Shown one piece after another: positions 7,839 through 45,991 of a DNA stretch of 64,000 nucleotides (the first letter of the stretch is position 1; the number at the start of each line of letters is the position of its first letter). Where the stretch lies: sequence record NC_022096.1, one strand, 5' to 3'. The notes under the pieces are model-generated. The model did no database searches, was not told the origin of the DNA, and saw nothing but the letters and a program-made list of their open reading frames with translations. The position numbers and the translations under genes were made by a program.

Positions 7839-10157
7839 ATGGTGGCGGAAGTATTGGTATTGTCCGACGTCGGCCTTCAGGCGATCAACAACGCATCCGC
7901 AGGTGGTCAGCTTGTGGATGCGGAGTCCTTTCGTATCGGCGACAGCGCGGGCAGCCCGAACAAAACGGATGCGACCGACATCCTCGGGAACATGCTGTTT
8001 GAAGGCAACATTCACCATGTCGAGGTGTTGAACAAGAACACTGCCCGTTTCGTGTTTGAAGTTCCTGGGTATCAAGTGACTCAGGACACCGAAATCAAAG
8101 AGATGGCAGTGTTCCTGAGCTCCTTCATCTGCTTGGGTCGTGTCGTTCTGAAAGCGCCAATCACCCTGCTGGCTGGAGAGACTACGCGCTTCAACTGCTT
8201 GCTGGTAACGAATCGCTGCGACCTGACCACGATCAACGTCACCTTTGGCGACTACTCGTCCATCCCGATGACGCCGTTCGTGTATCAGCTCCAGTCGCCC
8301 GGCCTGTCAAACTTCAACGCTGTCACCGTCCTCGATGGTCAGATCAACGATGACGGTTCGACTTCGCCTGTGCTCGCCATGCGTTATGGTGGCGGCAGCT
8401 TCCAGTGGGCGTTCAGTAACCACACGCGCATCTTCTTCGGGAAGCCCACTGCTGCAACCAGCACCAGCGTGACCATCGATGGTCTCGATCTGGATGAGAA
8501 CGAAGTGGTCATCGGCCACATCGTCAACGGCAACGGCCTGGGTCAAACTCGTCGCTGGCGTGTGCAGAACGGTCGTCTTGTCGAGGCAGACAATCGTCCG
8601 ATCAACGGCCTGGATTCCAACTCGACTATCGCTGTTTGGCAGCGTAGCGCTGGTGGCGGACAAGGCGGCGGCGCTTGCAGCTACCCGCCTTCGATGAATG
8701 GCGTGCCTGCTGACTGGGTTCTCGTTCGCGGTCATGGTGCTTGCCCGCAGTGGGCTCCGCCTCGCTCTGGTGCTGGTAACACAGCCACGTTGTACTCGCC
8801 GCCAAGTCGTCTGACGATGAACACGGTGAGCTATACTGGCGACGGCACCACCGCACGCTACCCGCTGGGTGCTCTTGAGCTGGAGAACGTCAACTACGTC
8901 CATCCAGTGCTCGGCGGTGTGAGTCAGCACCGTAGCTCGTTCGACATGGCGGCCAACGAAATCGAGTTCGTGGAAAAGATCCCGATGGGTCTGCCTATCG
9001 AACTGCGCACGTACAACCGCATCCCGTCGAATGGTTCGCGCCTGATCATCAAGACGGACTTCTTCGTCGGCGATGGTGTGACGCAGCGGTTCAAGATCAG
9101 CCAGCCGATTGAGAACGCCAACTACGTCAAGCCGTATCTGCGTGGTATTTTCCAGTTCATCACCACGTACACCTACGATGCTGCAACGCAAGAAGTGGTG
9201 TTCATCGGTCCTGTGCCTGCTGGCGTGGACGTGGAGCTGCGTTCATTCCGCTCCGAAGACTTCGAGGGGTCGAGTACCCAGATCAGCACCTACACGTACA
9301 CCACGCGTGAGGACACACTGTTCCTGGAGTTGCCTATCTCTCCGCAGTCGGTTGAGTACGTCGAAATCAGCCAGAGTGGTGCGCACATTCACGCGAACCA
9401 GTACAGCCTGGTGGACAACAAGATCATCTTTGCAGGCACCATTCGCAAAGACCTGGCGCTTGAAGTCACGGTGTACGACAACAAGATCAGCCAGGGCAGC
9501 GCCAACACCAACCTCAAAGGCGTGGTCGTCGATGCTGTGCTCTCCGGCCGTAGCTTGAAGTTGCTGCGCCACGGTGACAAGCCCATCAGCTTGCCGATTC
9601 CAGCAATCTCGCTGGAAGCTGGTCCAGGTATGCGTATCAGCGGACAACATCCGTTCTATCGGATCGAGTCCACAATCGCAAACCAGATGACAGACGCCAA
9701 CGCCAACTTCAAGCACTCCGACATCCGGACGCAGAAGGACTCTTCGGAGATTCAGTTCACTCATCGGGTGAATCTGAGCACCGACGTCATGGTATCTGTC
9801 CACGCCGACTTCTCTGCGCAGCTCGGCCCTGGCTTCGTGTCCGTCGAGGGCTTGGAGATTATGGAGTACGTGGTTGGTTTCCGTACTTCCAAGTCGCGTG
9901 AACCTGAGTACGGCCGGCAGATTGCAGGCACGGGTACTGCTGGTTTCAGCTCCTTGGCGGGAGACAAGAACGAGCGCGCCTACTCCAACGCTTCGTTGAC
10001 CCAGGTGTATGACGTGATCGTTGCCAACCACGCTGCCGGTTACATCGACATCGTGGTGAAGATGCGAGTGAAGAACGCAAACGTGAGCCAGTATGGCTCG
10101 CTGCTGTCGTTGACCGTAAACATTGTCGGTACTCCGAAAATCGCAGCCAGCGAGTAA
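7839..10157 (+). CDS. Tail fibre-base/baseplate-associated structural protein
   Basis: N-terminal LSDVGLQAI...FRIGD collar-type region; repeated GDG.T.RF.I units; operon context. Confidence 0.6.
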   Translation: MVAEVLVLSDVGLQAINNASAGGQLVDAESFRIGDSAGSPNKTDATDILGNMLFEGNIHHVEVLNKNTARFVFEVPGYQVTQDTEIKEMAVFLSSFICLGRVVLKAPITLLAGETTRFNCLLVTNRCDLTTINVTFGDYSSIPMTPFVYQLQSPGLSNFNAVTVLDGQINDDGSTSPVLAMRYGGGSFQWAFSNHTRIFFGKPTAATSTSVTIDGLDLDENEVVIGHIVNGNGLGQTRRWRVQNGRLVEADNRPINGLDSNSTIAVWQRSAGGGQGGGACSYPPSMNGVPADWVLVRGHGACPQWAPPRSGAGNTATLYSPPSRLTMNTVSYTGDGTTARYPLGALELENVNYVHPVLGGVSQHRSSFDMAANEIEFVEKIPMGLPIELRTYNRIPSNGSRLIIKTDFFVGDGVTQRFKISQPIENANYVKPYLRGIFQFITTYTYDAATQEVVFIGPVPAGVDVELRSFRSEDFEGSSTQISTYTYTTREDTLFLELPISPQSVEYVEISQSGAHIHANQYSLVDNKIIFAGTIRKDLALEVTVYDNKISQGSANTNLKGVVVDAVLSGRSLKLLRHGDKPISLPIPAISLEAGPGMRISGQHPFYRIESTIANQMTDANANFKHSDIRTQKDSSEIQFTHRVNLSTDVMVSVHADFSAQLGPGFVSVEGLEIMEYVVGFRTSKSREPEYGRQIAGTGTAGFSSLAGDKNERAYSNASLTQVYDVIVANHAAGYIDIVVKMRVKNANVSQYGSLLSLTVNIVGTPKIAASE

Positions 10158-25828: not shown

Positions 25829-25842
25829 GACCGGGTAACTCC

Positions 25843-25878
25843 AAAAGGGGCTAAGGTCTAGGACTTTAGTCCCTTTTT
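25843..25878 (+). terminator. Intrinsic (possibly bidirectional) terminator
   Basis: AAAA-GGGGCTAAGGTC-TAG-GACTTTAGTCCC-TTTTT, 12 bp stem with 2 G-U pairs. Confidence 0.85.
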
Positions 25879-25896
25879 CGTTTCTGGAGCCACGAT

Positions 25897-29396: not shown

Positions 29397-29403
29397 ACGC
29401 AAC

Positions 29404-29435
29404 AGGCTGTGGAGCTGAGGCTCTACGGCCTTTTT
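29404..29435 (+). terminator. Intrinsic terminator
   Basis: AGGCTGTGGAGC-TGAG-GCTCTACGGCCT-TTTT. Confidence 0.8.
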
Positions 29436-29469
29436 GCGTATCTATGCCAACATTTTTACGGGGAATCAT

Positions 29470-34905: not shown

Positions 34906-35297
34906 GCTTGACATCAATCTTTCGGCTCGCGCCTGTACGTGCAGCCGTCATAGGACCTAGCTTGTTGGGTGCCAAAACGGAGTACCGCAATCCTGGCATC
35001 AGCCTGCGCGTACTCGACGCCGACGCCGAAAAGGGTTCGTATGTCGGCGGTTTTCCTGCGGTAAAGTTGAGCTCCGTGCGTGATCGCTTTGCTATCTCCA
35101 TGGGGAGCGTCACGGCGCCCGTCGGGGAGAAGCAACATTCTGCGTTGGCTCCAATATACGCATCGGCATCCGCCCGCGTCACCGATCAGCCGAGTGTTCA
35201 AGAAGGGCTGATCACGCATGTTCGCGTAACTACGGCAAGCGCTCGCATTGCCGCACCTGCTCACTCCACAGTTTCTATCGAGGTCGAATATGCGTAA
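34902..35297 (+). CDS. Hypothetical protein
   Basis: ATGA overlap upstream and 8 nt overlap downstream. Confidence 0.5.
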   Translation: MSLTSIFRLAPVRAAVIGPSLLGAKTEYRNPGISLRVLDADAEKGSYVGGFPAVKLSSVRDRFAISMGSVTAPVGEKQHSALAPIYASASARVTDQPSVQEGLITHVRVTTASARIAAPAHSTVSIEVEYA

Positions 35298-37197
35298 GCT
35301 CCTTCCAAAGCCGATTAAAACCCTGCGCGACGGGTATGTCGTATTGTTCAACGGCAAAATGATCGCGGACAGCGAACTGTACACTGAGTCCGGACAAAAA
35401 CTCAGCGATGCCAACTATCCGATGCCGAAGCTGACTACCACAGGAACTGTCGTCATTAGCGAGCTGTCCTACAAGGAACCTTCCGGAGATTCTCGCAATT
35501 CGTATGTGCAGACCACGTTCGTTGCAGACAACGGGCGTGTGGCCGAAGCCTGTAAACAACTTAACGACACGGGTACGAACTGGCGCGAGTTTCTGAGCGG
35601 CGAGGATCGCCACTGTTTCTATGTCTTCGGCATGGACAGTCCATTTCCTGCTGTATACACTGATACCAAAGGCAGCCAAGCTGGACGTATTAACGCACGC
35701 CACCAATCTTGTGCCCTCGATGTAACGGCCGAGACAACTTCGCGCGTGCTTGAGCCAAATCAGGTCATCAACTACGGAACCTCGACCAGTGCGCAATCTC
35801 CAAGTACCCCAGGTGCGTCCTACCTTGGTATGAGTCGCATCTTAGATGAATCCGACACTCGGTACCTGAGTCTAGTGGTGCAATTGAACGGTACTATGTC
35901 GGCATACGGTTCCTCGACATATTGCCCGACGTTGCAGACAGTACGCAAGGATTACTCCGTGCGCGACGCTGGGTATAACGCGACTACGGCTCCGTGTATT
36001 CCACTGTGGCACGATACTACGGACAAAGTGTTCTTTGCTTGGGAATTGTCGAATAGCCCGACAGCGTACGGGTTGGCAGGTGCAATTATTCGACCAATCG
36101 CTCTCCACTATAGTTCCGACATGGTGGCGACTCGCGTACAAGCTGGCTACACCGTGACATTGGACAGCTTCGTTAGCTCAACCATATCTGGATTCACCTC
36201 CAACAAGCCGTGGCGCACGCTACCAATCATTCGCGCTCTCAAGAAGGCCGATGGTCTCCTGACCGCGTTCATTCCGAATGTTCAGGGTATTGCTGGAACT
36301 GTTCAGACAAACCTCGTGGGCAGTGTTTCTCTGGACCGTGTCGAGTATAACTACGTCACGAAGACCTTTGGTTCCCGTATCCAGATGAACGTCGTTGATC
36401 CAGATACTGGCTTGACGCCCACCTGGGGCGAGAACATGGTTGTCGTCCGCGACTCCAACTGGGCGAACGCGAAGATGAACACTGGGGATAACTACCCTGC
36501 GCACTTCCAGTTCTCCTTCATGCACGAGGTAGATAACGAGACCTACGTCGTCATCCTTGTGACGGGCAACGGCATTCCCAGCCGCAACCGCAACAACAAC
36601 AATTTCCAGTATCCGACGAATACCGTGCAGTACACGTTGCGCTTGGATAAGGCAGACAAGACGAAAGCCTATCTGGTTGCCCGTGAAAATCTGGATGGCT
36701 TCTTTGGCACGCAGCGTTCGCTCTACTCGTTCGCGGGTACTCAAGATCACAGCAGCCTGTATTGCATTTGCGACAATGACGTGGTGCGCCTCGTGTTCGA
36801 TCAGACGCAATTGAAGTACGTCCTGTCCGACACTGTGATCGACGTGGATGCTGTTAGCCTGCTGGTCAAGGACAACGGCGACGTGTGGTTGATGGATCAG
36901 ATGCAGCGCGTGTACCAGATGCGCCAAAGCAACGCTGATCTGGTGCGCCTGCGCTTCGGCCAGGTGAATGACCGCTTCGTCGAGGCTCCGTATGACGTCC
37001 AGCTATTCGTCAGTGCGGCTAATTTCATGGGAGAGCTTGGTGCTAAACCCATTGAGCTGGTAATCGACGGACCTGCCGTGTTCAAAGCGAACAACGGCAA
37101 GAAACTCAACATCACCACGTCCGCAGCAGATGAGCTGGCTTTGCTCATCACTGTCACCGGATACGGTGAGATTTACGTGACACCCAGAGGATTGTGA
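35290..37197 (+). CDS. Paralog cassette protein 4 (635 aa, more divergent)
   Basis: GAGG SD to ATG 35290; similar length and C-terminal Ig-like module. Confidence 0.6.
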   Translation: MRKLLPKPIKTLRDGYVVLFNGKMIADSELYTESGQKLSDANYPMPKLTTTGTVVISELSYKEPSGDSRNSYVQTTFVADNGRVAEACKQLNDTGTNWREFLSGEDRHCFYVFGMDSPFPAVYTDTKGSQAGRINARHQSCALDVTAETTSRVLEPNQVINYGTSTSAQSPSTPGASYLGMSRILDESDTRYLSLVVQLNGTMSAYGSSTYCPTLQTVRKDYSVRDAGYNATTAPCIPLWHDTTDKVFFAWELSNSPTAYGLAGAIIRPIALHYSSDMVATRVQAGYTVTLDSFVSSTISGFTSNKPWRTLPIIRALKKADGLLTAFIPNVQGIAGTVQTNLVGSVSLDRVEYNYVTKTFGSRIQMNVVDPDTGLTPTWGENMVVVRDSNWANAKMNTGDNYPAHFQFSFMHEVDNETYVVILVTGNGIPSRNRNNNNFQYPTNTVQYTLRLDKADKTKAYLVARENLDGFFGTQRSLYSFAGTQDHSSLYCICDNDVVRLVFDQTQLKYVLSDTVIDVDAVSLLVKDNGDVWLMDQMQRVYQMRQSNADLVRLRFGQVNDRFVEAPYDVQLFVSAANFMGELGAKPIELVIDGPAVFKANNGKKLNITTSAADELALLITVTGYGEIYVTPRGL

Positions 37198-37204
37198 TTC
37201 AAAG

Positions 37205-37220
37205 GGCACAAGGACGTGCC
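37205..37220 (+). promoter_or_regulatory. CsrA/RsmA-type ANGGAN hairpin, copy 1
   Basis: GGCAC-AAGGAC-GTGCC, 7 nt after TGA. Confidence 0.7.
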
Positions 37221-37238
37221 TACAACTGAGACCCAACC

Positions 37239-37910
37239 ATGTTCAAAATACCAAGCATTTCGCCTTGGCCAGGTGACCGACCGGTAGAAAGCGAGTACAC
37301 GATTCTCAACGCGCAGGAGGGCGTCAACGGCATCTACCGAGTCTCAGGACCTGACGGTGAGGAGTTTGATGCCTACTGCGACATGACAACCGACGGCGGC
37401 CATTGGATTCTCATTGCCAGATGGGCCGCGTCTCCGAACAAGACGATTACATGGGGACAGGTTATCGTCAAAGACGCCTCACTGAACACTACGACCAATA
37501 GCGCTACTCTGTACCCTGTGATCCCCACAGGTGTCCGCAACGTGGCCAAGGAAGTGTTGTTCAAAAGTGCGGCTTCTGGCTGGGTTAGCCGATACGGCCA
37601 GTGGTTGAAATTCACCACTACGGATGATCCTGCCCTTGTCATCACTTCGACTGGCATTGATGCAATGCGTGGTAGTGATCGTGCGATTGTGAAGATGCAC
37701 GGTGAGAGTGCAGGCTGGGGAGGGAACACGTCGATGACCAACAACTTCTCGCTCTGGACACAATGGGGTAACGGCGGCCCATGTGGTGGTGCCGGCGTCT
37801 GCGGTTCTCAGAAGATTTGCCCAGTAATTAGAGCCAACTACAACTACAGTTGCCATTTCGATTTCTCCTCCGTGAAGCAACTGTTTATCAGAAGTCGTAT
37901 TCCTGAATAA
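37239..37910 (+). CDS. Fibrinogen-related domain protein (putative lectin/adhesin)
   Basis: NGIYRVSGPDGEEFDAYCDMTTDGGHWILI matches the fibrinogen C-terminal/intelectin N-segment motif. Confidence 0.75.
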   Translation: MFKIPSISPWPGDRPVESEYTILNAQEGVNGIYRVSGPDGEEFDAYCDMTTDGGHWILIARWAASPNKTITWGQVIVKDASLNTTTNSATLYPVIPTGVRNVAKEVLFKSAASGWVSRYGQWLKFTTTDDPALVITSTGIDAMRGSDRAIVKMHGESAGWGGNTSMTNNFSLWTQWGNGGPCGGAGVCGSQKICPVIRANYNYSCHFDFSSVKQLFIRSRIPE

Positions 37911-37920
37911 AGAGGCAATC

Positions 37921-40900
37921 ATGCTTAGCCTGATTCCAAGACTAGCTCCATGGCCGCTAGTACGCGGAGACCTACGGAGTTATCCGACCCTACTAAGCAA
38001 GACTGCGTTTTCCGCAGTGCCGACAACTGGCCTGTCTGGCAGCATAGTCCAGCTAAGTCACTTGACGTACAAGCCCGAGACTGGCAAGCTATTCGTTCCA
38101 CTGCTGCACAGTGATCGGACTGGACGGCTGGCTGTTTATGACGTAGCCGGGAACTCGCTCACGCAAGCAGTGTCTTTTGCCGCAATGGGAGGCACAGGAG
38201 TGCTTCGTCCAGGCGCCCACCACACACTGAGCAGAACTGCCAGCGGGGCAGCATCCGGTAAAGTACCTGCAGTGGTCACATGGGGCACAACATCGACACC
38301 CTCTGGTATCGGTGTAGGTCTTTTCAACGAGACAGCCTCCGCCATCGAAGGGTTTACGACGTCCGCCGCGAGCATCGTCAGCAACCAGTCAAACTTGAAC
38401 TTGCAAGCGTCAATCATCATGAATGCCGCTGGTGACGTAGGGCTTGTGCAGTACATCGACGGACCAGACAGCACTCGCTATCTGAAATACAGGAAGGTCG
38501 TATACGATCAAGCCCAGGGCAAGCTAGTCGTCGGCACTGGCGCCCAAGAATTTGTAGGTCAGCAGCAGCCTGCAGTCGCCCGATACTACAAGGATTCCTT
38601 GTTTGTTGTGTGCGGGCTTGCCAGCTCAGGCAAAGCATTTGCGCAACTGCTCGATGTGTCTGGTGATGCTCCAGTACTGGTAGACTCCGCACCTGCGCTT
38701 AAGGCGAGTTCTCTAGCCTGGGGAAAAGCATCTATCGATGTCGTTGGGGACAATTTGGTCATCACGTATCTGGATGCAACTGGTGACCTTAACGCGGAGC
38801 TGTTCGCACTCTCCTCAACTTCCATTACGCGCAAGTCCACACAACCGCTGGGAGGCTTCACGACCTCCTCAGGTGTGCGCGATAGTATCGTTCTAGGTGA
38901 CACTGTATTCGCTCTGATCGTAACTGGCAACTCAGTAGACGTGGCGAAAACAACGATCGGTGCGCAAGGCGTAACGCGCTTCACCGTTGACCGTAACGTC
39001 ATGACGTTGGATGCCACGTATACGCAGGCGTACATGGCAAAGATCAGCGACACTCGATTGCTGTTCGTCAAAGCTGGCACCACCGGGGCGATGCAATACC
39101 AGTTTGTCGATTACGTGTGGCGTGTCGATCTGACTCCGTCCAAGGTGCTGGCCCAGTATCGGTTCTACGACGGTGAAGCCATCAACGAAGTCGGCGAACG
39201 CTTCGCTCTGCTGGGCTCTGGCGCTACAGTCGGCAATGGCCGCCTAAACACCACAACCAACACGACTTCGCGCATCGAGCAAGACCAGGTCTATTTCGGG
39301 CCTGACGATGATCTGACGATAGAGGCGATTGTAAAAGCAACGTCTTCCGGCAGTAACGGGTACTCTCCGATCTGCCAGTGGAACGTAGGCGGCTCCAACA
39401 ATAACTCCTGGGCCATGTCTGTCGTTAGCGGGCTCCTTCGCTTCTCGTGGTCTTCCAGTGGGTCTGCATCATCAACATACCTAACGTCAAACACGCCCGT
39501 CCCAACTGGCATCGAAACACACGTCGCGGTTGTTCGGAAAAACGGCGTGTTCCGACTGTACGTGGCTGGGCAGCAGCAAAACGAAACTTCGGTCGACGCT
39601 ACCGCTAACGCATTGAACACCAGACCAGTGTCCACGAGCTGGTCAGACACGACCGGTTGGTTGAACGGGTCACGAGGCAACATTCGGATCAGCCGCGAAG
39701 CGCTGTATGACGGAGATTTCCAACCTCCGACAGAACTGCCGACGATCACTCGTCCGACATACAGCGAACAAGATCAGGCTGCGTGTGTTTTCCAATTGGA
39801 TTTGCGCCGCGACAATCTGTTGGACGAGGTTACGGACAACCAAGTCACGTTCGTCAACGGTACCGCCCTGACGAATGGACGCATCGTCACGGTAAACAAT
39901 ACGACTTCGCAGTACACCTGCCAGAGCAAGAAGTTCGGTGAGGGTGATTTCACGGCTGAGCTGATGATCAACCTGCAAGCTGTCAGCGCAACGTACGGTG
40001 CTGTGATCATGGGCAACTGGCGTGCAGGCGGTGTAGCCAGTGACGAGAACCGTTGGTGCATCATCCTGGACAGTAATCGCAACATTGGCTTCAACATGGC
40101 CAGATCGGCCGACGCCAACGACTTCGCTTGGATGATGTCCTCGACGCCTGTTCCATTGAACGTGGACTGCCACATTGTAGCGGAGCGCGTAAATGGAGTC
40201 GTGACTCTCTACCTGAACGGCAGCCAGGTGGCGCAATCCAACGAGACTGATTTCAACTTCCCAATCCGCGGAGGTGAAGCCGGTTGGAAGGTGCACAGTA
40301 TCAGTTCTCAGGTTGCGTACACCGTGGGAATGCGCTGCTGGAATCTGCGCATCATGGACAAAGCCTACTACAATGGCGATGTCAAGCGCGAGAATGAATT
40401 CCCAGCGCTGTCTGTGAAAGAGTACGTCATAGTCAACGGCGCCTATCTGCACCCGGACTTCTCCCTGCAGGGTGGCGCTACTCAAACGGAAGTTGGCGTT
40501 GATATGACCGCTGGCAAATACATCTTGGGTACAGGATCGCCCAAGTATGTGTTCTACCGAGGCGATTTCACAGTCGAAGCAACGGTCACACCACGTAGCT
40601 TGGTCTACGGTACTGGTGCAGGTTCCGGTTCTGCTATAGTCCCTCTGTGGGCGTGCCATACCTGGGCTGCTCCTGGGCAGCCAGTGAACTGGGAACTATT
40701 CTTGAACTTAGGAACGAACCAGATTGCGTTCGGCACTTCCCATTCTGACTCTACGCTCAGTCGAACAATGCCTTACACATTCACTCTTGGCCAGCGCATA
40801 AACTTCAAGGTGGTGCGCCGCCGCAGTCAGATGTATGCCTTTGTGGACGACACGCTCGTAGGTGTGACCGACATGCCCTACAACATCGGATATGACATAA

Positions 40901-41010
40901 CACAGCCTCCGTTCATCGGACGCCGACGTGGTGGCGGTAGTGGTGAAGTGAATTGGTGGAACGACGTTCTTCTGGAGAAATTCATTATCACCAAGCGCGC
41001 CAAGATGTGA
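37921..41010 (+). CDS. LamG/ConA-like lectin array protein A (1029 aa)
   Basis: DDLTIEAIV...THVAVVRKNGVFRLYVAG; GDFTAEL...CHIVAERVNGVVTLYLNG; GDFTVEATV. Confidence 0.8.
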   Translation: MLSLIPRLAPWPLVRGDLRSYPTLLSKTAFSAVPTTGLSGSIVQLSHLTYKPETGKLFVPLLHSDRTGRLAVYDVAGNSLTQAVSFAAMGGTGVLRPGAHHTLSRTASGAASGKVPAVVTWGTTSTPSGIGVGLFNETASAIEGFTTSAASIVSNQSNLNLQASIIMNAAGDVGLVQYIDGPDSTRYLKYRKVVYDQAQGKLVVGTGAQEFVGQQQPAVARYYKDSLFVVCGLASSGKAFAQLLDVSGDAPVLVDSAPALKASSLAWGKASIDVVGDNLVITYLDATGDLNAELFALSSTSITRKSTQPLGGFTTSSGVRDSIVLGDTVFALIVTGNSVDVAKTTIGAQGVTRFTVDRNVMTLDATYTQAYMAKISDTRLLFVKAGTTGAMQYQFVDYVWRVDLTPSKVLAQYRFYDGEAINEVGERFALLGSGATVGNGRLNTTTNTTSRIEQDQVYFGPDDDLTIEAIVKATSSGSNGYSPICQWNVGGSNNNSWAMSVVSGLLRFSWSSSGSASSTYLTSNTPVPTGIETHVAVVRKNGVFRLYVAGQQQNETSVDATANALNTRPVSTSWSDTTGWLNGSRGNIRISREALYDGDFQPPTELPTITRPTYSEQDQAACVFQLDLRRDNLLDEVTDNQVTFVNGTALTNGRIVTVNNTTSQYTCQSKKFGEGDFTAELMINLQAVSATYGAVIMGNWRAGGVASDENRWCIILDSNRNIGFNMARSADANDFAWMMSSTPVPLNVDCHIVAERVNGVVTLYLNGSQVAQSNETDFNFPIRGGEAGWKVHSISSQVAYTVGMRCWNLRIMDKAYYNGDVKRENEFPALSVKEYVIVNGAYLHPDFSLQGGATQTEVGVDMTAGKYILGTGSPKYVFYRGDFTVEATVTPRSLVYGTGAGSGSAIVPLWACHTWAAPGQPVNWELFLNLGTNQIAFGTSHSDSTLSRTMPYTFTLGQRINFKVVRRRSQMYAFVDDTLVGVTDMPYNIGYDITQPPFIGRRRGGGSGEVNWWNDVLLEKFIITKRAKM

Positions 41011-41017
41011 TCTATAC

Positions 41018-41033
41018 GGCACAGGGACGTGCC
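41018..41033 (+). promoter_or_regulatory. CsrA/RsmA-type ANGGAN hairpin, copy 2
   Basis: GGCAC-AGGGAC-GTGCC, 7 nt after TGA. Confidence 0.7.
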
Positions 41034-41064
41034 ATTTCTATGTATTCAATTACGGGAGCATCCT

Positions 41065-44000
41065 ATGCTGAGTCTGATTCCGAGACTAGCACCTTGGCCT
41101 TTGCCGAGGGCATCCTCAGAGGTAAGTGACCTTTGGGTGCAATATCGATTTCTTGGCACTGAAGCCATTGATGAAGTTACGGATGCTGTAGCCACGCTCT
41201 ACGGAACCGCCACTTTGGCTGACGGTAAACTCGTGACTAACCCAGCGAGTCCTGCCAACTACGCGGCCATGAACAACATCATCTTCGACGCCAACGAAGA
41301 TTTCAACATAAGCCTGAACGTGAATATGCCGTTCAGCAACAGCCGTCCATACAACACTATTCTTGGTGTGTACACTTCGACCGCAGGTCCACGTGCTTGG
41401 GCTCTGGGTCGCATCGGTAACGACACTAACCCGTCGAAGCTCCACTTCGCCATGGTCTCAGGAGGTGTCAAATACGACTTCTACGGTCCCGTGCTGAACG
41501 CCGACACTGATTACCACATCGAAGTGTCGCGCACTCAGAACGTGCTGTACATCTTCGTAAACGGCAACTTGGAGCTGGCTACGCCTTTTGCCTTGGGCAA
41601 CGATCAGGCTTCTTTGCCCAGGATGCGTACCGACGTTATCCTCGCCGAGGGCCAGACGGCGACGCTCACGCACCACGGCGGCGGCTATAAGTGGGGCCTT
41701 CAGATTTTCAAAGGTAAGGGCGGTCATACGTCCAACTTTACGCCCGAAGCACCTGTCGAATACTCGCGCCCGTACTACACGGCAGACGTAGCACAAGACA
41801 TCAAGCTGCAACTTGGCATGCGCCGCGGTACTAAGGCGTGCGAAGCCTCTGGTGCCCAGTTAGCCTTGAACGGCACAGCGACCGTAGGTAAGAACGCTCG
41901 CTTATCTTTGACGAACGTAACGACCTCTTACGCGAGTATCCCGGTTGCCGCATTTGGAGAAGCCGACTTTACCATTGAGTTCATGTGTAACCTGAGCGCT
42001 GTGCATTCGACATATGGTAACCATTTCGGGCACATGTTTAGCTCGGTGAGCGCCAGCGAGGATAACCGCTGGATCGTTTGGGTGTCGCCTTCGGGTCGTC
42101 TGGGCTTTTCGATGAGCTTATCCGCGAACGCGAATGACACTGTAGGCACAGGTTCCGTAGAGGGTGCCTTCAAGTTCAACCGTGACAATCACATTGTTGT
42201 CCAGCGTAAGGATGGCGTCATCAAGCTCTACTTGAACAAACAAGAAGTGGCACAAATGGCACAAGCTGCACCCATCAGGGGCGGCGCTGGTGTGTTCCGC
42301 ACACAGTCGCTCAACGGTGCAACCTCGTGTGCCGGCCAGCTGTGGAACATTCGGATTGCTGACCGGGCACTCTACTCGGAACAGGTCAAGACCAAGCCAA
42401 CATTCCCGCAGTTCACCAAAGAATACGACCCCACGCTGTTCATGCAGTACACGTTCAGCTACGACGAAGCGATCAACGAAGTTACGGAGACGTTCGCGGC
42501 TCTCTCCGGCAACGCGGCCGTATCAAATGGCAGGTTGTCCACTGGGTCTTCGGCGAGCGACAACATGTCTACGCCTGCCACGTTGATCGAACCGAACGAA
42601 GACTTCACGTTGGAGGTGATGTTCAACTGCACCACGCATAACGTGAACATGCCGATTCTCGGTATCGTGGGTGGGAGTAACACAGGCGTATCCAAGAACG
42701 CATGGTACTTGCACTACGACGTTCCTGCTGCGGCATTTCGCTTCATGGTGTATGACGGTACTGGCGCCAGTGACATGGTGCAGTTCGCACGCCCCAACAT
42801 CTTCAATACTGACACGCACATCGCAATAGCCCGTAAAGGCGGTGTGATGACGCTGTTCATCGCGGGTCAGCCAGTTGCCAGCACACCAAGCATCAAAGGT
42901 AACGTGCCGACTTCTGTGCAGATGGGCACCACGTTCTCCTCAACGTACATGAACGGGACGCGAACAAACTTCCGTCTGGTGCGCGGACGCGCGCTGTACG
43001 ATTCCGCGTTCGAGCCTCCGGTAACGCTGCCTGTTGTAGGTCGTCCGACGTACACCCAGCAAGAAGCCGCTGCGACCAAAGCGCAGATCGATCTGCGCCG
43101 AGACAGTGCGCGAAACGATGCCAACGGACGCTCCGTTCAAGTTTATAGCTCGGCACGTCACGTTAGGGGCCGCATTCTTCATGCTGCCGCAACGTCGTCG
43201 TTCTACTACGCACCATGCGAGCCATTCGGAGCTGGTGATTTCACCATAGAGCTGGACTTTAACCTGACATCGATCAACGGCACGTACGGAGGTGCACTGG
43301 CCGGACAGTGGGTGCGAGGCAACGTAGCCTCAGAAGATAACTGCTGGCTGATCTATGTAGGACCAACCAGACTCATCCAGTTCGCCTGGGCCCGCAGTGC
43401 CGCAGCGAACGATTTCGACTTCATCGCGTCTGCGGCAGGCGTGTTTGATTTCAGCGCTGACTACCGTTTGGTTGTGGAGCGTATCGGGACCACGCTGACG
43501 ATCTACCTGAACAATGTCCAGGTTGCACAGGGTACGTGCGCGATCCCGTTGAGAACAAACGCTCCCCATTACGTGCGCAGTAACAGCTCGGCAAACCTAT
43601 ATGCGTTCGGCGGTTCTGTGTGGAATCTGCGCATTTCGGATCGTGCAGTGTACAACGGCAATGTAACGCGAGTCCCACTGTTCCCGAAAATGCCGAAAGC
43701 CGCCGAGTACACGGACCAGAGTCTGTTGAACGACATTGTTGTGCAGTGCGATATGAACGAAGGGAACGCACGCAACGCCAAGACAGGTGAAGTCATTACG
43801 TTCTCAGGTACGGGTGCGGCTATTCGTGAGCGCTTGGTGACGACACTTGCCAACACTTCGCGCTGGTATATCCCGTGCGGTCCGTTCAGTGCTGGCGATT
43901 TCACAATCGAGTTCGATTTGAACCTGCTGAGTTCCACTGGGGCTTCGTCTCGTCCGATCTTCGGTCAGTTCAGAGGTGACGTAGGACCAAACTCGTGGGT

Positions 44001-44760
44001 TTTCTACACCACGTCATCTGGTAACTTGGCGTTCCAGTGTTTGGGTGTAGATGCGTCATCGCTGAGTATCGACTCTCTCAATGGGCCTATCGAGAAGCGC
44101 ACGCTGACAGCAGGTAAAGAACATCACGTGGTTGTCGAGCGCAAGGCTGGCGTTGTGACCATGTACATCGATGGTGTTGTCATCGGCAGCGGAGCTTTCA
44201 CTGCACAGCTTGTGGACATGTCGGCGTATCCGTACATCACGAACCTGTACGATCTGTCCACGGCGAAGTATTGTGCCAGTGAGATTGGCAACGTGCGTAT
44301 TGCCAAGCGTGCCCTGTACAATGGTGTGATCACCAAAGCAAGGCTGCCGCTCGTCCCGAACCAGAAGCCTTCGTTGACTGCGAACATCGGTTCGGCGATT
44401 GGTACTCTGTCTGGTGCGTGCCAGAACTTGTATTACGGTGGCGTGCAAAGCTCGTTGGGTGCATTCAGCCATACGCTGTTCCGTGACATCCGCGATCCGC
44501 AGAACGTCAAGACTGTTCGCCTTGTTGCGCTCGCTCTCGACAGGACGTACACCGTGCTGGCGTGGCGAGAAGTGGATATGCCGCCGACCGCGGATATGCC
44601 GCAGTTCACCAACTCGTTGAAGATCGGGAACGCCGCACCTCTGCTGATCTCCAATTCGTCCGGCGCTAGTGTTGCAAATGGCGTCACGGGGCGGTATTGG
44701 TCTGGCAACCCGTTTGGTCCGTTGACACACGGAACTGCCATTCCATTCGAGTTTGTGTAG
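41065..44760 (+). CDS. LamG/ConA-like lectin array protein B (1231 aa, five LamG units)
   Basis: GGGAG SD to ATG 41065; five DF(T/N)(I/L)...H.V.R....L.(L/I)(Y/F).(N/D)G units. Confidence 0.8.
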   Translation: MLSLIPRLAPWPLPRASSEVSDLWVQYRFLGTEAIDEVTDAVATLYGTATLADGKLVTNPASPANYAAMNNIIFDANEDFNISLNVNMPFSNSRPYNTILGVYTSTAGPRAWALGRIGNDTNPSKLHFAMVSGGVKYDFYGPVLNADTDYHIEVSRTQNVLYIFVNGNLELATPFALGNDQASLPRMRTDVILAEGQTATLTHHGGGYKWGLQIFKGKGGHTSNFTPEAPVEYSRPYYTADVAQDIKLQLGMRRGTKACEASGAQLALNGTATVGKNARLSLTNVTTSYASIPVAAFGEADFTIEFMCNLSAVHSTYGNHFGHMFSSVSASEDNRWIVWVSPSGRLGFSMSLSANANDTVGTGSVEGAFKFNRDNHIVVQRKDGVIKLYLNKQEVAQMAQAAPIRGGAGVFRTQSLNGATSCAGQLWNIRIADRALYSEQVKTKPTFPQFTKEYDPTLFMQYTFSYDEAINEVTETFAALSGNAAVSNGRLSTGSSASDNMSTPATLIEPNEDFTLEVMFNCTTHNVNMPILGIVGGSNTGVSKNAWYLHYDVPAAAFRFMVYDGTGASDMVQFARPNIFNTDTHIAIARKGGVMTLFIAGQPVASTPSIKGNVPTSVQMGTTFSSTYMNGTRTNFRLVRGRALYDSAFEPPVTLPVVGRPTYTQQEAAATKAQIDLRRDSARNDANGRSVQVYSSARHVRGRILHAAATSSFYYAPCEPFGAGDFTIELDFNLTSINGTYGGALAGQWVRGNVASEDNCWLIYVGPTRLIQFAWARSAAANDFDFIASAAGVFDFSADYRLVVERIGTTLTIYLNNVQVAQGTCAIPLRTNAPHYVRSNSSANLYAFGGSVWNLRISDRAVYNGNVTRVPLFPKMPKAAEYTDQSLLNDIVVQCDMNEGNARNAKTGEVITFSGTGAAIRERLVTTLANTSRWYIPCGPFSAGDFTIEFDLNLLSSTGASSRPIFGQFRGDVGPNSWVFYTTSSGNLAFQCLGVDASSLSIDSLNGPIEKRTLTAGKEHHVVVERKAGVVTMYIDGVVIGSGAFTAQLVDMSAYPYITNLYDLSTAKYCASEIGNVRIAKRALYNGVITKARLPLVPNQKPSLTANIGSAIGTLSGACQNLYYGGVQSSLGAFSHTLFRDIRDPQNVKTVRLVALALDRTYTVLAWREVDMPPTADMPQFTNSLKIGNAAPLLISNSSGASVANGVTGRYWSGNPFGPLTHGTAIPFEFV

Positions 44761-44764
44761 GACA

Positions 44765-44784
44765 ACAGCACAAGGACGTGCTGT
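44765..44784 (+). promoter_or_regulatory. CsrA/RsmA-type ANGGAN hairpin, copy 3 (compensatory stem change)
   Basis: ACAGCAC-AAGGAC-GTGCTGT; AGCAC core begins 6 nt after TAG. Confidence 0.7.
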
Positions 44785-44825
44785 ACGGCAGCGTAATTTA
44801 CACGCATCAAAGAGGAGAATCCACA

Positions 44826-45518
44826 ATGCGTCAACTCCAAGTGTTTATGACTGCCGAGGCGCGTACCAAGGCAGAACAATTCTCCTACCAGAATATGGTA
44901 GGCGGGGAAATGCAATCGTTCGTGCATATGTTGCAGAAGCTGCACGAAACCGAAGTGCTCGACGGACATGGCACAGAGGCTACAAAGACTCTGCCGCGCC
45001 TCATGGAGATTTTCGAGCGCGCCCAAATTCAACCAGAAGATACTGCCGCTACCGCAGCAGGCAAACTCTGGGAACTCTACAGCAATCGACAAGCGATGAT
45101 CGAGGAGCGCGTTGCGTGCACCTTGCGCGACATCTTCCACAAGGCTGATCTGTCTCAGGTCACCTGCGTCGATCTGCCGAACACACAGAAGTTTCCGATC
45201 CAGGCGACGTTGCAAATGCGTCCGGGCTGGCAATTCTGTGTGGCTTATGATGCCCTGGGCGAGCTGAACTGTGGCGTCGGACAGTGGGTCGCGTTTAACT
45301 TGATGACCTCTCCGCATACCTGCAGCCGTGAAGTGCTGTTTGCTGTAAGTACACCCTACGGTCAGCTGGACTACAGCAAGGTCCACCAGCTCGCCCGTAA
45401 CTTCATCGAGGTGCTGCACAATGAAAATCGAGTTCAAGGTGATTCCGCCGGGACCACTGCACCAGCAGAAGTCCAACCTACCCAAGGGCAAACGCAACCG
45501 CTCCGGTGGAAAGACTAA
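44826..45518 (+). CDS. Hypothetical protein
   Basis: AGAGGAG SD to ATG 44826. Confidence 0.65.
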   Translation: MRQLQVFMTAEARTKAEQFSYQNMVGGEMQSFVHMLQKLHETEVLDGHGTEATKTLPRLMEIFERAQIQPEDTAATAAGKLWELYSNRQAMIEERVACTLRDIFHKADLSQVTCVDLPNTQKFPIQATLQMRPGWQFCVAYDALGELNCGVGQWVAFNLMTSPHTCSREVLFAVSTPYGQLDYSKVHQLARNFIEVLHNENRVQGDSAGTTAPAEVQPTQGQTQPLRWKD

Positions 45519-45627
45519 AGTCTCTGCTAAGCTGGATGCGGTCAAGGCGCAGAAGCACTTGGCTGAAATGTTGAAGCGGGCCGCCAAACGTGCAGCTCAC
45601 GACAACTACAAAGAACTGGATCACTAA
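45421..45627 (+). CDS. Small basic protein
   Basis: GAGGTG SD; Lys/Arg-rich; 98 nt overlap with upstream ORF. Confidence 0.45.
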   Translation: MKIEFKVIPPGPLHQQKSNLPKGKRNRSGGKTKVSAKLDAVKAQKHLAEMLKRAAKRAAHDNYKELDH

Positions 45628-45934: not shown

Positions 45935-45991
45935 TTTAGGGAGGCACTAGCACAATTGCCATGGAGGCACGACGAATATGGGAGTACCAAC

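Follow-up and report, generated by a model that had tools for sequence, protein, structure and literature searches.

CsrA/Rsm proteins are a master post-transcriptional switch between motile or acute and sessile or biofilm life in many bacteria, and CsrA dimers bridge sites about 10-63 nucleotides (nt) apart, with an optimum near 18 nt. The site bound by RsmA and RsmF was described as 5'-CANGGAYG, where GGA is invariant and lies in the loop of a stem-loop, N is any base and Y is C or U; RsmA binds targets that carry a single site (10.1101/315341). SELEX put the RsmA/RsmF motif in a hexaloop (10.1101/2020.08.24.265819). Crosslinking and immunoprecipitation with sequencing in Salmonella confirmed A(N)GGA in apical loops, and CsrA can also act by masking RNase E sites or by promoting Rho termination (PMC5207318). 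The locus compared here with such sites lies in Pseudomonas phage PaBG, a jumbo phage of the genus Baikalvirus with a genome of 258,139 bp and P. aeruginosa PAO1 as its host. The stretch analysed, called the window, is 64,000 nt long and comprises bases 186001-250000 of record NC_022096.1 (window coordinate = record coordinate - 186000). In its + strand late/tail region, three short hairpins (copies 1, 2 and 3) stand just past the stop codons of large genes.

The PaBG hairpins are like RsmA/RsmF (RsmN) sites in their core, in a hexaloop closed by C-G, in a short stem and in the host species. By contrast, RsmV, RsmY and RsmZ hold their GGA hairpins within a small RNA (sRNA), whereas the PaBG copies are single sites about 3.8 kb apart in a coding operon. 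RsmV sequesters RsmA and RsmF in P. aeruginosa.

The three hairpins of PaBG

A sequence-only reading of the window had proposed three hairpins there; all three sequences were confirmed on the + strand at the positions given for them (Table 1), and their cores begin 7, 7 and 6 nt past the stop codons of gp218, gp216 and gp215, as claimed. These genes had been called three consecutive large virion genes. The three stop codons stood; the genes, however, are not consecutive, with gp217 lying between gp218 and gp216 (order on the + strand: gp218, copy 1, gp217, gp216, copy 2, gp215, copy 3, gp214), and gp215, gp216 and gp218 are presumptive virion genes. The exact fit to the high-affinity CsrA/Rsm site also held: all three copies read ACA[A/G]GGACGU, containing the CANGGAYG core (A/UCANGGANGU/A) with GGA invariant. 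So did the second GGA in the downstream Shine-Dalgarno (SD) sequence of copies 2 and 3, found 30 and 40 nt from the respective loop GGA. The GGA in the SD of gp215 is a candidate second, low-affinity Rsm contact.

The 14-mer GCACARGGACGTGC had three exact matches in the window, and all other window matches carried at least two mismatches. No further copy was found in the other 194 kb of the PaBG genome. The chance expectation from base composition was 0.0016 matches per window and 0.006 per genome. The enrichment of degenerate versions that the same reading had looked to for support was absent: RCANGGANGY had 14 matches in the window vs 11.2 expected, and 45 NNGGAN hexaloop hairpins were counted genome-wide vs about 67 expected, indicating that the signal is the three exact copies and not a genome-wide bias. 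The open-hexaloop hairpin was present in the minimum free energy and centroid folds of all four spacers folded, including those of the three copies. The stems had 4-7 bp and about -10 kcal/mol, with no consistent U tract.

In a permissive Rfam search, copy 2 and the RsmV model aligned at the model's 3' GGA hairpin (GACAC-AgGGAU-GUGUC). RsmV was the only family returned by the E-value search of the window, at 12.7 and 16.1 bits vs a gathering score of 100; because 16 bits is far under that threshold, this is a resemblance to one hairpin and not membership. Rfam held no family for the element, and a search at gathering thresholds of 13 related loci, the window excluded, found no Rsm family. It had also been suggested that PaBG might supply its own CsrA. 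No CsrA homologue was detected when tblastn and a CsrA profile, with hand-typed query sequences, were run on six-frame open reading frames (ORFs) of the whole genome and of retrieved loci (best E = 0.07-0.8), indicating that a trans-acting factor would be a host protein.

Conservation in the PaBG lineage

No close relative of PaBG was present in INPHARED or IMG/VR; protein-pattern scans of IMG/VR with gp216 and gp218 returned PaBG itself only, and tblastn against 50,697 phage genomes likewise found no close relative. The distant adhesin homologues in PA5oct-like phages and pPa_SNUABM_DT01 had no such hairpin after the gene, where the spacer was AT-rich and promoter-like in PA5oct and a classical terminator in DT01. 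The relatives compared below are uncultured and came from Logan assemblies through protein searches with gp218 and gp214, together with one activated-sludge contig from an alignment-based metagenome scan. The gp218 homologue was 84% identical to the PaBG protein, and the gp214 homologues were 96, 78, 77 and 47% identical. Since these contigs were retrieved through proteins and not through the hairpin, they are an unbiased test of the element.

The copy 1 ortholog (contig L011; L numbers are our labels for retrieved loci) read TGA ttctagt GGCAC-AGGGAC-GTGCC, 7 nt past the stop, and the copy 2 ortholog (L141) read GCAC-ACGGAC-GTGC, 16 nt past the stop. Four copy 3 orthologs, each 6-7 nt past the stop, read TGCAC-ATGGAC-GTGCT (L144), GCAC-AAGGAT-GTGC (L141), TGCAC-ACGGAT-GTGCA (L145) and TGCAC-AGGGAC-GTGCA (L384). 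In the relative with 47% identity (L148), TGCAC-AAGGAT-GTGC was found 8 nt past a stop, adjoining the SD of a gene whose product starts MLSII. The sole invariant block in a nine-copy alignment was GCACA.GGA.GTGC, which the tenth copy (L384) keeps too, and the flanks had diverged. Across the 10 lineage copies, loop position 2 was A, G, C or U and position 6 was C or U; GGA, the loop A and the closing C-G pair were invariant. All 10 copies keep C-A-N-G-G-A-Y-G, and the degeneracy of the lineage equals that of CANGGAYG position for position, with N free, Y as C or U and the rest fixed.

Loss of the GGA loop in relatives while the stem persisted had been named beforehand as a result that would tell against Rsm binding. 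The opposite was seen. The GGA did not vary in the 10 copies, the stem shrank to 4 bp in several relatives while the loop stayed, and the loop was the most conserved part. Stems of 4 bp are too weak for a stability or terminator hairpin and are typical of protein-induced CsrA sites, which favours recognition by an Rsm protein. The distance from stop codon to hairpin was 6-8 nt in 9 of the 10 copies, the copy 2 ortholog of L141 being the exception.

The hairpin family in other phages

IMG/VR was scanned for the exact 16-mer GGCACARGGACGTGCC, which was found in at least 100 stretches; a control 16-mer with the same stem and loop composition and no GGA (loop ARGAGC) was found in 29 (IMG/VR loci covered, L012-L111 and L149-L264). 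Seed and control were compared by genomic context and not by raw match counts. Many GGCACARGGACGTGCC matches lay in short spacers just past the stop of a long ORF that reads in the same direction; an SD and ATG often came next, and the matches were from many unrelated contig families. Among the matches listed, the seed stood past a stop on the same strand in 22 of 71 distinct contexts and the control in 0 of 29 (Fisher p = 3e-4); opposite-strand placement was seen 4 times. The comparison was replicated with a variant stem, GGCGC-ARGGAC-GCGCC vs GGCGC-ARGAGC-GCGCC, and gave 14 of 98 vs 2 of 110 (p = 1e-3; opposite strand, 2), again among the matches listed; these variant-stem matches were mostly 7-9 nt past the stop.

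Two checks guarded against circular reasoning. When the stem alone was fixed, all intergenic 6-nt loops other than the seed were ANGGAN. When the core CANGGAYG alone was fixed, 9 of 23 intergenic cores were enclosed by at least three further pairs, with differing stem sequences, vs about 5% by chance. Across the family, the mode of the stop-to-hairpin distance was 7-9 nt and that of the hairpin-to-start distance, where a gene followed, about 20 nt, and the loop GGA stood about 17-18 nt from the SD. A typical module is a stop codon, 7-9 nt, the CANGGAYG hairpin, about 8-12 nt, the SD and ATG.

Several contigs carried more than one copy, with compensatory changes in the stems. Contig L027 has GGCAC/GTGCC and GGCGC/GCGCC stems (about 5075 and 5231, - strand). 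Five copies, including AGCAC/GTGCT, were found in L039 (552-2746), and three GGGCC-ACGGAT-GGCCC copies together with one GGCAC copy in L072 (473-940); L029, L093, L098 and L110 hold several copies each. The hairpin had been tied to adhesin genes by the sequence-only reading, and this tie did not hold up, as the same class stands between genes of many functions in many unrelated phages. The flanking genes encode small early-type proteins, Ant antirepressors, in one case a 1522-amino-acid (aa) internal virion protein with a tail fibre behind it, and in another a tailspike with an acyltransferase behind it. In E. coli prophages, one family stands behind the ant gene; of 5,426 complete E. coli genomes, 483 have a match to the region around it. 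With the module described above shared by E. coli prophages and numerous unrelated phages, PaBG would exemplify a general way in which phages exploit the host Csr/Rsm system.

The prophage pieces with the Ant hairpin also hold the C4 antisense RNA and isrK (L035 6045-6226 and 8785-8970; L111 4956-5042). They are a P1 immI-like or Gifsy-like immunity region.

Genes and other features around the hairpins

The block behind copy 3 has counterparts elsewhere in PaBG. Blocks of the GTAATTTAC type, G[C/T]GTAATTTAC[A/T]C[G/A]CA, recur about 20-25 nt 5' of the starts of gp157, gp296, gp234 and gp93, and they are a candidate phage promoter element, possibly one for the phage sigma factor gp118. The GCGTAATTTAC ahead of gp214 may likewise be a promoter. 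This promoter-like block probably cuts copy 3 off from the SD of gp214, and because the intervening GCGTAATTTACACGCAT is promoter-like, gp214 transcripts may start 3' of copy 3.

Table 1. Positions of the hairpins, genes and other features (window coordinates, except where record coordinates are indicated)
Feature	Position	Strand	Description
Copy 1	37205..37220	+	GGCAC-AAGGAC-GTGCC; 6 bp with G.U pair 37204/37221; gp218 stop TGA 37195-37197; 18 nt ahead of gp217 ATG
Copy 2	41018..41033	+	GGCAC-AGGGAC-GTGCC; gp216 stop TGA 41008-41010; 31 nt ahead of gp215 ATG
Copy 3	44765..44784	+	AC-AGCAC-AAGGAC-GTGCT-GT; 7 bp; core 44767-44782; gp215 stop TAG 44758-44760; 43 nt ahead of gp214 ATG
SD of gp215	41054..41058	+	GGGAG; GGA 41055-41057
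SD of gp214	44812..44817	+	GAGGAG; GGA 44814-44816
Conserved block GCGTAATTTACACGCAT	44791..44807	+	Between copy 3 and gp214 SD; present in all relatives
GTAATTTAC-type blocks	PaBG record 114291, 138354, 204371	+	
GTAATTTAC-type block	PaBG record 64907	-	
gp218	35290..37197	+	635-aa hypothetical protein, no Pfam match; 5' of copy 1
gp217	37239..37910	+	223 aa; Fibrinogen_C match below Pfam cut-off; 3' of copy 1
gp216	37921..41010	+	1029-aa LamG (Laminin_G_3) adhesin-like protein, N-terminus MLSLIPRLAPWPL; 5' of copy 2
gp215	41065..44760	+	1231-aa LamG adhesin-like protein; 3' of copy 2, 5' of copy 3
gp214	44826..45518	+	230-aa hypothetical protein; 3' of copy 3; homologues served to retrieve relatives
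Terminators	25829-25896, 29397-29469	+	After gp225 (annotated tail sheath) and gp223

The adhesin-like proteins gp215 and gp216 are paralogues with 35% identity overall and 93% over the first 15 aa, and the N-terminus of gp217, MFKIPSISPWP, resembles their anchor. A short N-terminal motif, MLS[L/K/I]IP..AP.P, is common to genes of the cluster whose bodies are otherwise different (window 37239-37283, 37921-37965 and 41065-41109), and it was also seen at L011 2680-2787, L141 1355 and 5834, and L148 232. From its sequence, the common motif looks like a segment by which exchangeable fibre/adhesin modules are attached or anchored. The relatives differ in the genes that they have: gp217 is absent in L011, and the adhesins of L141 have 1468 aa and 1003 aa. 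The possibility that the hairpins are duplicated gene ends was rejected, as the C-termini of the three preceding genes are unrelated and the DNA flanks could not be aligned between copies.

A PA5oct homologue at 25% identity is annotated as detected by electrospray ionization tandem mass spectrometry. The gene numbers in Table 1 of the PaBG paper differ from the RefSeq locus tags, and its 160-kDa 'gp215 long tail fibre' fits RefSeq gp271 (PMC7412058); because of this difference in numbering, the published virion proteome cannot be read directly onto the RefSeq annotation.

Further downstream, the spacer between gp213 and gp212 of PaBG holds a degenerate GCC-ATGGA-GGC (window 45958-45968). The same spacer in L145 (2833-2854) has an 8-bp hairpin, GGCTAGTC-ATGGAC-GGCTAGCC, with the stop codon inside its 5' arm, and L141 (about 10014-10035) has a like hairpin with the loop ATGGAG. 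Judged by sequence, this element may represent a fourth site, one in decay in PaBG. An unannotated ORF of 68 aa, MKIEFKVIPPGPLHQQKSNLPKGKRNRSGGKTKVSAKLDAVKAQKHLAEMLKRAAKRAAHDNYKELDH (window 45421-45627, +), overlaps gp214 at its 3' end, in a different frame, and occupies the annotated 119-nt 'spacer' before gp213; its product is basic. The ORF is kept in all relatives, including the one with 47% identity, in which it is better conserved than the tail of gp214. On the other side of the cluster, two strong intrinsic terminators delimit transcription units of the tail region.

Discussion

The explanation that we favour, with a confidence somewhat better than even, is that the three elements are sites for host RsmA/RsmN that act in cis on intercistronic RNA. 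A polycistronic late mRNA would carry the hairpins in sense orientation, and host RsmA or RsmN/RsmF would recognise the GGA that each displays in its C-G-closed hexaloop. An RsmA dimer docked on the hairpin could bridge to the second GGA in the downstream SD, that of gp215 and possibly that of gp214 on read-through RNA. Such bridging would lower translation initiation of the next cistron, and the yield of the LamG adhesin-like genes would vary with the level of free RsmA. With the stop-to-hairpin distance constant at 6-8 nt, the 5' arm of the hairpin should come within reach of a ribosome that terminates upstream. More speculatively, translation of the upstream gene would evict the protein, coupling derepression to that translation.

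Several points weigh against recognition by RsmA/RsmN. The case is built on sequence throughout. Copy 1 has no GGA in its downstream spacer near its weak SD, and copy 3 may mark the 3' end of the gp215 message and not the leader of gp214. The three hairpins had been described as covarying, with a compensatory G-C to A-U change in the stem of copy 3. However, covariation within the lineage was not significant by pair counting: the four inner pairs never vary, and the fifth pair was G-C, A-U, U-A or unpaired (in 4 of 9 copies), no better than shuffles, showing that the change in copy 3 is weak evidence by itself. Conservation of the inner stem GCAC/GUGC goes beyond what the CsrA consensus calls for. 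Among the 39 family copies, 17 had no SD-bearing start codon within 100 nt, and some family members were followed by sigma-70-like promoters, indicating that repression of the downstream gene is not the whole story. At promoter-followed sites, masking of an RNase E site or Rho termination is equally possible. Most of the IMG/VR contigs have no assigned host, and BLAST of L039, L072 and L029 against annotated phages gave no useful host assignment. Finally, gradient profiling by sequencing suggests that RsmA/N is largely sequestered by sRNAs in exponential P. aeruginosa (PMC8545117).

The same placement past stop codons could be produced by a generic hairpin that marks the 3' ends of large cistrons, with a role in processing, stability or weak termination of the mRNA, independent of CsrA-family proteins and with a GGA that is incidental or serves an RNase. 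We regard this as unlikely, although it is the best placed of the alternatives. The most constant feature of the element is its distance from the stop codon (mode 7-9 nt in the family); the gap to the next start, by contrast, ranges over 12-48 nt, and some family members are followed by promoters and not by an SD. A terminator scan flagged copy 2, and a classical terminator fills the L141 spacer before the first adhesin gene. However, real terminators of the cluster have 12-18-bp stems with U tracts and about -28 kcal/mol, far from the short and weak stems of the hairpins; the GC-rich stem of about 7 bp or more with a U tract that marks an intrinsic terminator was absent from the PaBG hairpins. 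Further, erosion of the stem under an invariant loop is the opposite of what is expected of a purely structural element, and the variation in the loop matches CANGGAYG exactly.

Binding by another factor, whether encoded by the phage or a non-CsrA-family protein or RNase of the host, would account for an inner stem that is invariant in the lineage and common across phages beyond the CsrA consensus. About 70% of PaBG genes are orphans (PMC7412058), which leaves room for a phage-encoded binder. A shared host factor is nevertheless simpler, since the hairpin is found in phages without evident shared genes, E. coli prophages included, and the CsrA/Rsm consensus explains every conserved position (C, A, GGA, Y and G). 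We know of no other bacterial RNA-binding protein with this hairpin specificity, and the chance of such a factor is judged small, a little below that of a generic processing hairpin.

It is improbable that the GGA loop is a mimic of the SD that pairs with the 16S anti-SD and holds a terminating or standby 30S subunit for re-initiation. The placement right past a stop and about 20 nt before the next start would suit this role, and AAGGA and AGGGA loops are able to pair with the anti-SD UCCUU. However, loop position 2 is also C or U in the lineage, and position 6 is always C or U where the SD has G. The conserved closing C-G and loop A would be left unexplained, and a hexaloop limits pairing.

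Least probable of all, and given very little weight here, is an element that works as DNA: a palindromic operator, a sigma-54 promoter or a linker for the shuffling of receptor-binding cassettes. GCAC-N6-GTGC is a perfect inverted repeat, GGCAC...TGC resembles the -24/-12 elements of sigma-54 promoters, and the copies border genes that differ among relatives, such as gp217, which is present or absent, and the adhesins (1029 and 1231 aa vs 1468 and 1003 aa). However, the GG-to-GC spacing is 1 nt too long for a sigma-54 promoter (TGGCAC-N5-TTGC), and the GG is not conserved, with AGCAC, TGCAC and CGCAC in copy 3 and orthologs and GGGCC stems elsewhere. An operator would not be expected to conserve an asymmetric loop, and across phages the stems covary rather than keep half-sites; the bias in strand relative to genes (22:4 and 14:2) also speaks against an operator. 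A recombination linker of 14 nt would be very short, and unrelated phages also have the motif between genes that do not vary.

A sponge for Rsm/Csr proteins, which the sequence-only reading had offered as an alternative, is unlikely because the three isolated sites are 3.8 kb apart and spread over 7.6 kb of coding RNA; the locus has single sites between long ORFs and not the clustered GGA hairpins of a small non-coding transcript with its own promoter and terminator. A stimulator of frameshifting or readthrough was rejected at copy 1, the only copy at which frames were read by hand, where in-frame readthrough adds 31 codons and then ends and a stop between hairpin and ATG closes the downstream frame.

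Recognition by RsmA/RsmN also leads to a wider proposal, to which we give less than even odds. Many phage lineages, from a 258-kb Pseudomonas jumbo phage to environmental phages of about 40 kb and E. coli prophages, may have converged on a canonical high-affinity CsrA/Rsm hairpin set 7-9 nt past a stop codon and about 20 nt before the next start, an intercistronic switch that reads the Csr/Rsm state of the host and whose repression is relieved when the terminating ribosome melts the hairpin; in PaBG, it would set the dosage of the LamG adhesin-like proteins by way of the Gac/Rsm system (planktonic vs biofilm). The sequence data are compatible with a virion adhesin content that follows the Gac/Rsm lifestyle switch. 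However, the planktonic-versus-biofilm account of virion composition is an extrapolation, because adhesin genes are not the only ones that the hairpin accompanies.

As a cis element, the hairpin is a textbook CsrA/Rsm site, a kind already known. The literature searched, itself incomplete, yielded no account of phage mRNAs with CsrA/Rsm sites and none of a conserved family of such hairpins in phages, in agreement with the earlier statement that no such control had been described. The distribution of the hairpin suggests that phages commonly tie some of their genes to the host RsmA/CsrA regulator. If true, the output of phage proteins, among them tail-fibre-like adhesins (presumably receptor-binding proteins), the neighbours of antirepressors and the products of early genes, would depend on the physiological state of the host. 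This would bear on phage ecology in biofilms, on the lysis-lysogeny circuitry of prophages and on predicting the performance of phage therapy. A CANGGAYG hexaloop hairpin 7-9 nt past a stop codon is a search rule for such control points, and the hairpins offer a very clean natural set of candidate single-site CsrA targets for mechanistic work.

Among described systems, the lysis gene cel of ColE7 is a case in which host CsrA controls translation of a mobile-element gene within an operon (PMC2896534). It differs from the PaBG-type hairpin in that it is one gene of a plasmid colicin operon, with no repeated conserved hairpin family described (PMC2896534). In B. subtilis hag, two sites are present and BS2 lies over the SD, a layout like that of copies 2 and 3; the flagellin fliC leaders, with CAAGGAUG in a stem-loop about 50 nt 5' of the start, share with these copies the upstream GGA. 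The core of BS1 in hag is, as we take it, nearly the same as that of the phage hairpin (a full-text search for the string found nothing). However, the sites of hag, E. coli glgC and fliC are in primary 5' leaders, whereas the PaBG hairpins are intercistronic and at a fixed distance past a stop; moreover, the two-site repression of these genes has no counterpart at copy 1, which is without a second site, and copy 3 is perhaps cut off from its SD by a promoter. The PeSL stem-loops, known from T4-type phages, and the start-associated sequences (SAS/ESAS) found in Cluster K mycobacteriophages are short repeated intergenic motifs beside translation starts and at the borders of variable genes. Those motifs are lineage-specific and have no assigned host factor, whereas the PaBG-type hairpin recurs with the same sequence in phages that are unrelated and fits the site at which a known host protein binds.

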